The position numbers and the translations under genes are program-made. The notes under the pieces are model-generated. The model was not told where the DNA came from. It saw only the letters and a program-made list of their open reading frames with translations, and did no database searches. Shown piece by piece: positions 1-40,750 of a stretch of DNA of 64,000 nucleotides. Each line of letters starts with the position of its first letter. Position 1 is the first letter of the stretch. The DNA is from Auanema rhodensis (taxonomy: Eukaryota > Animalia > Nematoda): NCBI GenBank assembly GCA_964057225.1, contig OZ059895.1:17980001-18044000 (forward strand), in the 5' to 3' direction.

Positions 1-775
1 AATTCCTCCGGCAGCTCCAGCGGCTCCATTGACAATTCCTCCGGCGGCTCCAGCAGCTCCGTTTACAATTCCAGAGGCGGCTCCAGCGGCTCCGTTAACG
101 ATTCCTTGGGCAGCTTGTGCTAATCCTCCGATAATAGATCCTAATCCAAGATGAGCTCCCTTGACAATTCCTCCGGCGGCTCCAGCAGCTCCGTTGACAA
201 TTCCTCCGGCGGCTCCAGCAGCTCCGTTAACCACTCCGCTAGCGGCCATGTGAGCTCCATTGACCATTCCTCCGGCTGCGGTAGCAGCTCCGTTGACCAT
301 TCCTCCGGCAGCAGTAGCAGCTCCGTTGACCATTCCTCCGGCGGCTCCAGCAGCTCCGTTAACCATTCCGCTAGCGGCCATGTGAGCTCCATTGACCATT
401 CCTCCGGCGGCTCCAGCAGCTCCATTGACCATTCCTCCGGCTGCTCCAGCGGCTCCTCCAACCATTCCGGATGCCGCCATATGAGCTCCGTTGACCATTC
501 CTCCGGCGGCTCCAGCGGCTCCTCCAACCATTCCTCCGGCGGCTCCAGCGGCTCCGTTAACCATTCCTCCAGCTGCACCTCCGCCTAACATTCCACCAAG
601 CCCGAGAAGTGAGAGGAATCGAGCTCTTTTGATGAGCTCTACTTCTTGGCGAGAGGCATATCTAGCCTGAACATAGAAAAAATATGTTATTGAGGGTTAT
701 TGATACTTATATTACCTCAGTGGCTACAACAGCCATAATAAGAGCAAGTGCCAAGAGCAGGTGGCGACGGAACAT
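1..775 (-). CDS. Gene A: secreted Gly/Ala-rich 11-mer repeat protein, 3' end outside the window
   Basis: ATG at 775; exon 1 775-716 encodes the signal peptide MFRRHLLLALALIMAVVATE; 49-nt GT-AG intron 715-667; exon 2 reads ARYASRQEVELIKRARFLSLLGLGG then GGMVNGAAGAA repeats and GLGSIIGGLAQAA, a segment shared with the array genes. Missed by the ORF track. Confidence 0.9.
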
Positions 776-822
776 TTTGGTAAGTGACCAAAGAAATAAT
801 ACTTATTTCCATTTTGGTCTCC

Positions 823-881
823 TTATATATTTTGAACGTTATCACTGATTAGTTTTAATCCTGTTTATTGTACCTATTTGC
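823..881 (-). promoter_or_regulatory. Gene A core promoter: TATA, GATA and two FoxA/PHA-4-type sites
   Basis: Minus strand TGATAA-N8-ATATATAA (844-823); TGTTTAT at 862 and TATTTGC at 875 match TRTTKRY. Confidence 0.6.
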
Positions 882-1718
882 TGATGAAATGTTTTTGCTT
901 TAGTGATACTTCCTGTGGCTCTCTTAATTGTGTTCCATAGGTTCATTCAAACTCACATTCTTTACCAACAATACAGTATGGGCTTCACATTTATTCATCG
1001 CAACGATTGTATAAATCCCAAAAATAAAACATATCTGCGACCTGAATGTACAACTTGTATAAGCTTTGTTCAAAAATCGTAATACAATTACGTGAGCTCT
1101 GCCTAAATTGGACTTCATCACATTATGTAATTCATTGAATAAATATTTCTCCAGTTAACTAATGCTTGTAAGCTTTGTACTAAGTTCAGTTGGGATTTTG
1201 GAAAAAATAGTTTTTATTGGAGTGTATTTTTTGGCGGAAACTTGAATGAGTACTTCAAAACATTAATTTATTCATCCTTAATCAATTCTAACTGATTCCG
1301 TAAACAAATTACCTTTCAAATTCTTCTCAATTACAAGTTAGCTACTTAACAATTCGTATTTCTTCCTTATCGTGTTGGGAGGTAGCGTTCTCACCTTCTA
1401 CTATGCACTGTAAGCAGAGAGACAAACTGATAACTCATAATCAGCTTAATGAATTACTGAAGTTTTTCACATATCAAATAACTCCATTGTATATGTTATA
1501 TTTATTTTTTTATGTAAATTTTCTAAACCGCTGTTCCTTTAATTTAAAATGTTGTGAATCTTATTCAATCATGAAATAATTTAATGATGAGCATGCTGTT
1601 AGAAAAATAATTTAAAAAACTTAAATAAATAAAATAAGATTTATTTTTCATGTTACATTCATATTGTAATTTATGTACAGAAAAATATTGGTATCAAAGA
1701 AAGGGGTTTGTTATTTTC

Positions 1719-38537: not shown

Positions 38538-38971
38538 AAAATATCTTTTTAAAAAGAATGAGCAATCTTTAACAATGATAAAATCTGCCAAAAGATGTAT
38601 AACAACTAAGATTTCATTTTTGTCTCATGCTTGTACTTAGGCAATTATGTTTAAATAAACGCTCATATCCAATCATCTTATTATATCTAAAACCAAAACA
38701 ATCGAAATTAGAGATTAAATTACAGTTATACATGTTAATCGGTATTACTCATGATTAGAAACCTTAACAATAAAAAGGTTTATGAATATATATAAAGTAC
38801 ATATTGATATATAACGAGATTAATTTAATTACCTGTAAAACCATGAGGTATATTGCAAACGTAAATAAGAGATATCATAATTAGGAAATTTTCAAACGGT
38901 TCTAAAGAATAGAATAATAATAGTGACCTTAATAACTATAAATAAATTTTAAATCCTATTTTTGTGCCAAG

Positions 38972-39077
38972 TTACGAATTGGAAGAGCACACCAGATTCG
39001 GAGAACCCATGCTTTGCAGTACCCGATCAACCCACATAAGTGGTCCATTCAATTGTACATCAATCCAACAAGGAGTA
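38972..39077 (-). pseudogene. Orphan R-Smad terminal exon copy nearest the intact gene
   Basis: Same sequence as 11410-11515; intact acceptor AG and stop; 2.2 kb downstream of the true last exon in the Smad sense. Confidence 0.95.
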
Positions 39078-39700
39078 CTGAATCAAAAGAAGACAAGCAA
39101 ATAAGCTTTTATCAGTGTTGAATGCTGAAAACACTTGCAATATTGCTAAGAAGTTTTTTGTCCTTATCAATATCAGAAATAGTATCAGTACTGAGGTTCT
39201 TGTAAAGGAAAACATACTGAAAATGCTCTTAGCTACAAAACAGGATAAATAACAATTTTTAATAGCTATACGTTAAAATAAACTTATGTTTTTTGAAGAA
39301 ATATCTTTAAAAACTTTGTAAAGTTAAGTTATGTATGATTGAATACGTGAATCATTCATAATGTACTCATTATCAGTTTCAAAAAATTGTCACTTTGTTT
39401 GGATTCTTAAAGGATTAGAGTGTTTCTAAGCAGACACGCAAACACAATATGAACACATCACGAACATGACCTGATAGCAACAGGGCATTTCTTTCGGTCT
39501 TGAATTTAATTAGTAAAACTTTTCCTTTATCATTGCGGCATCGAAAACAAAAATCTTCAAATTGAATATTATAGTATTTATTACCTCATTTAGAAAGTAC
39601 AACATAAACTCATTAAAGGTTGAGTATGATAAGAACAGTGGTATATAATGAGTGAAGAGCTTTACTCCAGTACTCTTCTTACGGAAGGCAGTAATTCAGA

Positions 39701-40750
39701 ATGCATCGTTCGATGTGGACCGTTCTCTTTGCCGTGCTTATGGCTCAGGTATACTTTCAGTAACTTTAAATGAATTCTGAAATATTTTAGACTAGAGTAA
39801 GCGCTCGCTATGTCTCCACACAGCCTGAAGCCAAATTTTTGAGCATGGCACTTCCTGAAGGAGGTGTAGTCAGCGGAGCTGCTGGAGCCGCAGGAGGATT
39901 GGTTAACGGAGCTGCTGGAGCTGCAGGAGGAATTGTCAACGGAGCTGCTGGTGCCGCAGGAGGAATCGTTCGTGGAGCACACGGAGCTGCCACAGGATTG
40001 GTTAACGGAGCTGCTGGAGCTGCAGGAGGATTGGTTAACGGAGCTGCTCAAGCTGCAGGAGGAATTGTCAACGGAGCTGCTGGAGCTGCAGGAGGAATCG
40101 TTCGTGGAGCACACGGAGCTGCCACAGGATTAGTTAACGGAGCTAGTATTGGATTAGGATCTATTATTGGAGGATTGGCCCACGCTGCCAACGGAATTGT
40201 CAACGGAGCTGCAGGAGCATTGAATGGTGGATATTACGGAGGACCTGGAGTTATATATGGTGGATCATACGGAGTACCTGGAGTTATATATGGTGGATCA
40301 TACGGAGTACCTGGAGTTATATATGGTGGATCATACGGAGTACCTGGAAGCGTGTATGGAGGATCATACGGAGGATCATACGGAGTACCTGGAGGTATGT
40401 ATGGTGGATCATACGGAGGATCTGGAAGTATGTATGGTGGATCATACGGAGGATCTGGAAGTATGTATGGTGGATCATACGGAGTACCTGGAAGCGTGTA
40501 TGGAGGATCATACGGAGGATCATACGGAGTACCTGGAGGTATGTATGGTGGATCATACGGAGGATCTGGAAGTATGTATGGTGGATCATACGGAGGATCT
40601 GGAAGTATGTATGGTGGATCATACGGAGGATCTGGAAGTATGTATGGTGGATCATACGGAGGCCCTGGAGGTATGTATGGTGGATCATACGGAGGATCTG
40701 GATCATACGCATATCCACCATCTTACGGACCATGCCTTCAAATTAAGTAA
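39701..40750 (+). CDS. D15 terminal array copy (335 aa, expanded Gly/Tyr block)
   Basis: Same structure; longest Tyr block; Y>C near the C-terminus (PCLQIK). Confidence 0.9.

Follow-up and report, generated by a model that had tools for sequence, protein, structure and literature searches.

The pharyngeal cuticle of Caenorhabditis elegans contains lineage-specific, secreted low-complexity protein families that are prone to phase separation, are co-expressed in sharp waves and are proposed to build matrix by condensation (PMC9629831). In the epidermis, clusters of Gly/Tyr-rich CNC and NLP genes are controlled by the GATA factor ELT-3; the nlp-29 and cnc-2 clusters depend on this factor and are induced by fungus and by high salt (PMC2453101). 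In the epicuticlins (Asu-EPIC-1 and C. elegans EPIC), repeats of 49–70 amino acids (aa) bear YGD and GYR motifs together with basic stretches of the KR type (PMC9612446). Here we describe a gene cluster of the nematode Auanema rhodensis that can be compared with each of these systems. It lies in a stretch of 64,000 nucleotides (nt) of contig OZ059895.1 (assembly GCA_964057225.1, positions 17,980,001 to 18,044,000 of the forward strand), which we call the window. Positions 1–40750 of the window hold 19 intact genes, namely A, B and C on the minus strand, A being cut by the window start so that its 5′ part is available, and 16 tandem D genes on the plus strand. We regard it as secure that these genes form a co-regulated, very highly expressed (as seen in RNA for C and D0), lineage-specific set that encodes secreted low-complexity proteins. 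With moderate confidence, and knowing them here from genes and RNA contigs, we think that the likeliest fate of the products is to build an extracellular matrix or coat made of protein.

The cluster is marked by a compositional skew and a periodicity that run from position 1 to about 41 kb, the rest of the window being distinct, and Gly-rich open reading frames (ORFs) recur every ~2 kb in the ORF listing over the same span. Spliced models were built by script and by reading of the sequence. The D genes (n = 16) are arranged head to tail with start codons from 9929 to 39701, and each comprises a 48-nt exon 1, a 42-nt GT..AG phase-0 intron and one large exon; the reading frame is intact in 16 of 16, giving products of 228–335 aa. 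B and C have the same three-exon layout, in which a first exon of 60 nt is separated by a phase-0 intron (51 nt) from a large exon, and this in turn by a phase-1 intron (69 nt) from the last exon. The N-termini of all classes contain 2 basic residues and 11–13 hydrophobic residues, followed by an Ala/Arg-Tyr junction at residue 21/22. On inspection, the predicted cleavage context is V-S-A/R-Y in D and T-E-A/R-Y in A, B and C, with small residues at positions -3 and -1, and by the -3/-1 rule a classical signal peptide of ~21 aa is predicted in all classes. An earlier account drawn from the DNA letters (the sequence-only reading) had claimed that A, B/C and D share a signal exon, a phase-0 first intron, an Ala-Arg-Tyr motif and a promoter geometry, and that a small component is amplified 16-fold; the former is borne out in the 19 gene models and the latter agrees with the 16 intact D genes that we counted.

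Searches for the pattern GATAA-N9-TATATAAKG found 20 copies in the window, all of them inside the cluster, against 0.06 expected. One stands ahead of each of the 19 genes, and the twentieth is an orphan. In every cluster gene the GATA site is placed exactly 9 nt ahead of the TATA box, and the distance from the TATA box to the ATG is 54 nt in A, B and C and 59 nt in D. The same 23-mer is found ahead of all D genes (Table 1). Beyond this module, the D promoter sequence is unrelated to the A/B/C promoters, so that duplication alone does not account for the common geometry. The 700 nt ahead of D1 contain TGATAA 5 times, where about 1 copy would be expected (P about 0.005). We infer that all 19 genes are under the control of a GATA factor of the gut or epidermis. 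A vitellogenin-type promoter was considered and rejected, since the vitellogenin promoter element TGTCAAT was not found upstream of A–D.

Expression was followed in RNA contigs of four runs (X1–X4), which were mapped over 6000–11100, i.e. C and D0. Intron 2 of C (69 nt) is skipped in the contigs of 4 of 4 runs, and intron 1 of D0 (42 nt) in those of X1 and X4. Contig depth is 0 in every run over 9078–9760, the ~680 nt between C and D0, and the signal therefore comes from RNA and not from contaminating DNA. Depth in X3 approaches 1e4 for individual contigs on C and D0 and, when contigs are summed, amounts to 1e4–2e5 (1e4–2e5 for C and 4e4–1e5 for D0), compared with about 5 in X1, X2 and X4, and the two genes rise jointly by at least 1,000-fold in this run relative to its three sister runs. 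Coordinated expression, which the sequence-only reading had proposed as a test, was thus observed for C and D0, and the contigs support transcription, co-regulation and bulk expression of both. In the adjoining stretch from 11100 to 13000 (the D1 unit and its spacer), about half of which is predicted mRNA, 34–40% of sampled words occur in all four RNA runs. The splice-site orientation in RNA also fixes the coding strands; the Ser-rich and Leu/Glu-rich ORFs that run in other frames and on the opposite strand were therefore rejected and are by-products of the repeats. Near the start of D0, at 9789–9954, short contigs of the low runs carrying the D1–15 allele start ~75 nt upstream of the TATA box in a spacer that is otherwise silent, possibly owing to a minor start site upstream.

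The codon bias is of the kind that highly expressed genes typically show. Of the Gly codons of D, 83–84% are GGA, as opposed to 39% in the neighbours, and the cluster genes have raised shares of AAC, CAC and TAC (Asn, His and Tyr). CTG and CCG codons are almost unused in these genes. According to codon counts, ~99% of their Ala codons are readable by tRNA-Ala(AGC) with inosine at the wobble position.

The encoded proteins are modular, and Gly and Ala together account for about half of their residues. Each D protein starts with a short unique stretch, which is followed by a Gly/Ala 11-mer block of ~120 aa, a linker and a Gly/Tyr 11-mer tail. The Gly/Ala 11-mers are of the N-G-A-A-G-A-A-G-G-I-V type, with His-rich versions in D0 and Met-rich versions in A; the linker, G-L-G-S-I-I-G-G-L-A, is conserved in D and also present in gene A; and the tail 11-mers combine Gly and Tyr with V-P-G or G-S-G turns. 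Self-identity of D is maximal at lags of 11, 22 and 33 residues in both blocks. The C protein is composed of Gly/Ala/Leu repeats, a Gly/Ile/Val/His 30-mer block, an acidic Tyr/Glu/Pro domain, a Gly/Ile/His 18-mer block, a His/Glu 16-mer block and a Gly/Val/Asn C-terminus that is 11-mer-like, in that order, and the periods of its blocks are, in order, 18, 30, 18, 16/32 and about 22 residues. The acidic domain (residues 318–532 of C, window positions 8128–7484) is free of repeats and includes 50 Asp+Glu, 19 Tyr, 17 Pro and 4 Lys+Arg among its 215 aa. B is made up of the same modules. The 18-mer block encloses a (GGI)n run of 24 copies in C versus 3 in B, and there are about seven His/Glu 16-mers in C versus one in B. 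Gly and Ala make up 38% and 17% of the B product. Cys was counted 0 times in B, C, D0 and D1 and once in D15. Mature D is nearly uncharged, and the B/C acidic domain is strongly acidic. Every descriptive point that had been made earlier about modular repeat composition and near-absence of Cys is upheld by the models and counts. Mature proteins have 0 dibasic sites downstream of the signal peptide, and a neuropeptide-type precursor was rejected on that ground.

Structure predictions differ between the modules. AlphaFold, run on the single sequence of mature D1, returns one unbroken helix for residues 25–149 with a predicted local distance difference test score (pLDDT) of >90. The Gly/Tyr tail is predicted to be disordered, its pLDDT lying in the 30s–40s, i.e. 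<50. The hydrophobic moment of the 11-mer block has a sharp maximum at 98 degrees, equal to 3x360/11 as for an 11/3 helix; at beta-strand angles it is small. Disorder is also predicted for exon 2 of C (mean pLDDT 39), which covers the N-terminal half of the protein and takes in the acidic domain. A match of D1 to the 11-mer region of alpha-synuclein in the PDB sequence searches points in the same direction as the helix prediction, at a non-significant E of 0.89; nothing significant was found in PDB with D1, C exon 2 or C exon 3, and Foldseek gave 0 matches to PDB for the D1 model.

We found no relative of these proteins in much larger collections. Four pieces searched against Pfam gave nothing above cut-off and nothing at E <= 1 save a sub-threshold Senescence match, and the best scores in the ESM Atlas, 0.64 for mature D1 and 0.61 for the C acidic domain, are noise. 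The word-indexed search of 5.8 billion clustered proteins with mature D1 produced 3 weak compositional matches and no relative. These are a Mucorales fungal protein, a bacterial-looking protein and an unnamed protein, all with G-G-[IV]-V-N-G-A 11-mers and lacking a Pfam domain; their likeness to D1 is most simply explained by convergence, and such 11-mers may be a recurrent, undescribed repeat type. When the Gly/Tyr tail (105 aa) was compared by HMMER with proteins of 59–184 aa from the same 5.8 billion, a range that takes in the sizes of CNC/NLP/GRSP/FIPR peptides, 5992 candidates yielded 0 at E <= 0.01. An exhaustive phmmer search of 1.84 billion representatives with the 215-aa acidic domain, the only non-repetitive domain, yielded 0 matches. 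Low-complexity filtering may mask weak kinship in the D1 and Gly/Tyr-tail searches. The D1, Gly/Tyr-tail and acidic-domain searches returned no nematode protein, and because not even self-matches appeared, this suggests that the proteome of the species, or at least the cluster genes, is missing from public protein sets. A literature search by keyword and peptide motif found no description of the cluster proteins, the motif matches being mostly DNA primers. The sequence-only reading had recognised no described family here, in line with the empty Pfam, ESM Atlas, PDB, 5.8-billion and 1.84-billion searches.

Within the cluster, by comparison, relationships are readily detected. A is 54% identical to D0 (BLASTP E 4e-45), A, D0 and D1 are mutually related (E 4e-45 and 6e-14), and the B/C C-terminal block matches the D0 11-mers weakly (E 1e-4). 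Gene A thus encodes a D0-like protein, but its promoter and signal exon are like those of B and C, and the three classes therefore share ancestry through exchanged parts. B and C, whose starts are 4139 nt apart, belong to a duplicated segment of ~4.1 kb in which an A-type promoter is also found. The sequence 3′ of C (about 5220–6100) matches that 3′ of B (about 840–1718). Duplication of a segment that includes the promoter driving A explains the orphan module, which is a relic of the event that gave B and C.

In the D array, all 14 spacers from D1 to D15 (within 12979–39700) are 1163 nt long and identical to the base. There are 12 distinct gene sequences among the 16, identical genes adjoin one another (Table 1), and the differences are mostly whole 33-nt units. 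Module copy number varies between paralogues, always in frame, and partial units flank the array. This looks like recent, ongoing unequal crossing-over; alternatively, spacer identity could be due to gene conversion or could be exaggerated by assembly polishing. A GC-richer island of ~110 nt (11420–11530) is present at the same place in every AT-rich D spacer and has no Rfam match.

Table 1. Positions of genes and promoter modules of the cluster and of neighbouring genes in the window.
Feature	Position	Strand	Details
Gene A, 5′ part	1..775	-	exon 1 775-716 (signal peptide), intron 715-667, exon 2 666-1
Gene B, 1050 aa	1719..4991	-	exons 4991-4932, 4880-2792, 2722-1719
Gene C, 969 aa	6101..9130	-	exons 9130-9071, 9019-7483, 7413-6101
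Gene D0, 331 aa	9929..10966	+	exons 9929-9976, 10019-10966; His-rich variant, two 11-mer blocks
Gene D1, 265 aa	12139..12978	+	exons 12139-12186, 12229-12978
Gene D2, 261 aa	14142..14969	+	gene model
Gene D3, 265 aa	16133..16972	+	DNA identical to D4
Gene D4, 265 aa	18136..18975	+	DNA identical to D3
Gene D5, 254 aa	20139..20945	+	DNA identical to D6
Gene D6, 254 aa	22109..22915	+	DNA identical to D5
Gene D7, 265 aa	24079..24918	+	gene model
Gene D8, 265 aa	26082..26921	+	gene model
Gene D9, 228 aa	28085..28813	+	gene model
Gene D10, 228 aa	29977..30705	+	gene model
Gene D11, 250 aa	31869..32663	+	DNA identical to D12, D13
Gene D12, 250 aa	33827..34621	+	DNA identical to D11, D13
Gene D13, 250 aa	35785..36579	+	DNA identical to D11, D12
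Gene D14, 250 aa	37743..38537	+	gene model
Gene D15, 335 aa	39701..40750	+	longest Gly/Tyr tail; sole Cys in cluster
Promoter module of A	821..843	-	GATAA-N9-TATATAAGG; TATA 54 nt upstream of ATG
Promoter module of B	5037..5059	-	GATAA-N9-TATATAAGG; pattern search
Orphan A-type promoter module	5203..5225 (within 5155-5330)	-	no gene behind; pattern search and sequence
Promoter module of C	9176..9198	-	GATAA-N9-TATATAAGG; pattern search
Promoter module of D0	9856..9878	+	GATAAGAACAGTGGTATATAATG; pattern search
Promoter modules of D1-D6	12066, 14069, 16060, 18063, 20066, 22036		same 23-mer, GATAAGAACAGTGGTATATAATG
Promoter modules of D7-D11	24006, 26009, 28012, 29904, 31796		same 23-mer, GATAAGAACAGTGGTATATAATG
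Promoter modules of D12-D15	33754, 35712, 37670, 39628		same 23-mer, GATAAGAACAGTGGTATATAATG
Gene with SMAD look (MH2 domain)	41600-43400	-	cluster neighbour
NTF2/ran-4 homologue	44117-44700	+	exon 1 80% identical to Heterorhabditis bacteriophora NTF2
Gene with TRPM channel look, gon-2/gtl type	about 52000-62000	-	cluster neighbour; very short introns

Codon bias in the SMAD-like, NTF2 and TRPM-like neighbours is far below that of the cluster genes. The closest named match to the NTF2 exon, that of H. bacteriophora, shows the host to be a rhabditid nematode. Neither Rfam nor a tRNA scan matched anything in the window.

Of the described systems, the CNC, NLP-29-group, GRSP and FIPR proteins resemble the cluster proteins in having a signal peptide, a Gly/Tyr-rich composition and [GS]-Y-G-G-type motifs and in being nematode-specific (PMC2453101), and their clusters share with ours tandem amplification, fast evolution, a promoter GATA site and large swings in expression. 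The A. rhodensis proteins are, in contrast, 3–15 times longer, are not cationic and show no similarity detectable by HMMER; D adds the ~120-aa Gly/Ala 11-mer block, and B and C add five other modules. Membership in these families fails on size (D 228–335, B 1050 and C 969 aa) and on similarity. The pharyngeal IDPA, IDPB, IDPC, APPG, NSPB and FIPR families are likewise lineage-restricted, secreted, domain-free and predicted to be disordered (PMC9629831). Those of the IDPA, IDPB, IDPC, APPG and NSPB type are expressed in pharyngeal epithelia, with a peak at each moult. They differ in that a database search, in a collection expected to hold the C. elegans proteome, revealed no relatives of the cluster proteins, and in that this locus alone has these repeat units, the GATA-TATA module and a 16-fold tandem array. 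The resemblance to epicuticlins (PMC9612446) lies in a short signal exon joined to one large exon with a variable number of repeats, and in Tyr-containing, Cys-poor, disordered products. This exon layout is found in D (48-nt exon, 42-nt intron, single repeat exon) and is not family-specific. Unlike epicuticlins, the cluster proteins have repeats of 11–32 aa and no dibasic pairs; GYR and YGDE occur 0 times in B, C, D0, D1 and D15, and there was no match to the GYR-motif Pfam family (PF02756). Epicuticlin membership was rejected on repeat length, YGD/GYR motifs and the Pfam result. The cluster works like the known nematode secreted low-complexity systems without belonging to any. The sequence-only reading had spoken of an undescribed system: the label of an undescribed family stands, but "system" was too strong a word for a general kind that is already known in nematodes (PMC9629831, PMC2453101).

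Other likenesses are found among invertebrate biomaterials and among proteins of similar periodicity. Gly/Tyr- and Gly/His-rich invertebrate biomaterials include squid suckerins, the Nereis jaw protein, insect chorion, resilin and abductin-type elastomers; none of these materials is known from nematodes. The cluster proteins share with them a block-copolymer design, Gly-X-Tyr tails, VPG turns, His/Glu modules and a lack of Cys, but the likeness is purely compositional and no homology was found. Amphipathic helices with an 11-residue repeat are formed by synucleins, apolipoproteins, group 3 LEA proteins and type I antifreeze proteins. Like these, the D block has a strict 11-residue period, a moment near 98 degrees and a predicted continuous helix; unlike them, its repeats are almost uncharged and contain 36% Gly, and the proteins are predicted to be secreted. 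The sole sequence match among such proteins is the non-significant one to alpha-synuclein.

In the mechanism that we propose, a GATA factor of gut or epidermis would switch on the whole set together at a very high level, and a signal peptide of ~21 aa would be cut after Ala to leave an Arg-Tyr N-terminus. The D proteins, amplified 16-fold, would be the bulk component. Their Gly/Ala 11-mers could adopt an amphipathic 11/3 helix or change into some other ordered state, and could serve for self-association or for seating on a surface, and their Gly/Tyr 11-mer tail would be disordered, drive condensation and offer tyrosines for oxidative cross-linking. B and C would act as large modular scaffolds, with the acidic Tyr/Glu domain and the His/Glu repeats providing charge-, pH- or metal-dependent cohesion. 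An extracellular material is favoured because a small amplified component adjoins large multi-module scaffolds, because Cys and processing sites are absent, because [G/S]-Y-[G/S] tails drive condensation and can be oxidatively cross-linked, because His/Glu modules suit metal or pH switching, and because the nematode cuticle, which is largely made of such families, offers a precedent (PMC9629831). Candidate targets are a cuticle layer, the gut lining, an eggshell or uterine coat, a plug and a sheath; glue, silk, sheath or plug, as first suggested by the sequence-only reading, would each be a conceivable identity of the products.

Several points weigh against assembly into a matrix or coat. The expression data are assembled contigs of four runs from one 2019 study, and overlapping contigs are added together in the depths. 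Coverage in X3 nearly vanishes over the first 170 nt of D0 (46 versus about 7e4); our tentative explanation is that the assembly was fragmented at places where the D0 and D1–15 alleles differ. The condition of X3 could be infection or stress and not a developmental stage, and GATA sites alone cannot separate gut from epidermis. The predicted D1 helix is hypothetical in that it has 36% Gly, was predicted from one sequence and might be an artefact of the repeats. Pfam detected no chitin-, collagen- or ZP-type matrix domain in the four pieces.

If X3 is a challenged sample, the cluster may encode inducible epithelial defence or stress proteins, secreted in bulk by the epidermis or gut upon infection, wounding or osmotic stress as functional, enlarged counterparts of CNC, NLP, GRSP and FIPR. 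We grade this a serious rival, although its share of the probability is a small one. The Gly/Tyr tail, the tandem amplification, the promoter GATA site and the on/off behaviour between samples all match the nlp-29 and cnc-2 clusters, and the host lineage is rhabditid, as is C. elegans. What separates the two is size, D having 228–335 aa and B/C about 1000 aa against <~100 aa for CNC/NLP-type peptides, together with charge: the products are not cationic, mature D having almost no charge and the B/C domain being strongly acidic. Moreover, the 105-aa tail has no HMMER relative among proteins of 59–184 aa, and the 11-mer block and multi-module scaffolds lack a counterpart in CNC/NLP-type peptides. 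A true bulk biomaterial was also considered, silk-, glue- or elastomer-like, with helical Gly/Ala parts, cross-linkable Gly/Tyr parts and His/Glu scaffolds, and with a silk-gland-like adaptation of tRNA supply; we consider this stronger form of the material reading improbable.

Two further explanations are ranked less likely than an extracellular material or a defence secretion. The 11-mer helices might cover lipid layers, interfaces or ice in the extracellular space, for example in desiccation or cold, as surface-active protectants that build no solid. The strict 11-residue period with its moment maximal at 98 degrees, the long confident AlphaFold helix, the weak and non-significant alpha-synuclein match (E 0.89), the unrelated fungal and bacterial proteins with similar GG-[IV]-V-N-G-A 11-mers and the condition-dependent expression would all fit such a role. 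We nonetheless hold it to be unlikely: there is no significant similarity to synuclein-, apolipoprotein-, LEA- or antifreeze-type families, 36% Gly is unusual in a stable helix, and the Gly/Tyr tail and the B/C scaffolds are left unexplained. Least probable of all, and a surprise to us if true, would be a storage or nutritive secretion that the gut makes in bulk under GATA control and that provides oocytes, embryos or a brood fluid with a reserve of amino acids. C. elegans yolk genes are expressed in the gut from TGATAA-rich TATA promoters, and both this promoter type and the extreme abundance in one sample are reminiscent of them. Proteins with ~50% Gly+Ala would, however, be a poor amino-acid reserve, no lipid-transport domain was found by Pfam in the four pieces, and the TGTCAAT element is missing upstream of A–D.

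The lack of relatives in very large protein collections indicates that repeat-rich loci of this kind are easily missed by annotation. If the genes serve in defence or stress, they would extend the CNC/NLP idea to much larger proteins. The combination of a predicted uncharged Gly/Ala 11-mer helix with a Gly/Tyr tail, for which we found no described counterpart, could be relevant to work on protein materials and on phase separation, and the GATA-N9-TATA arrangement, fixed across 19 genes, offers a test case for how one factor can drive extreme output. If the products do form a true material, the cluster would be a compact, genetically tractable case of an animal inventing one from scratch, from ingredients that would comprise a shared signal exon, modules that grow by slippage, a tandem array amplified 16-fold and a single, simple promoter module.

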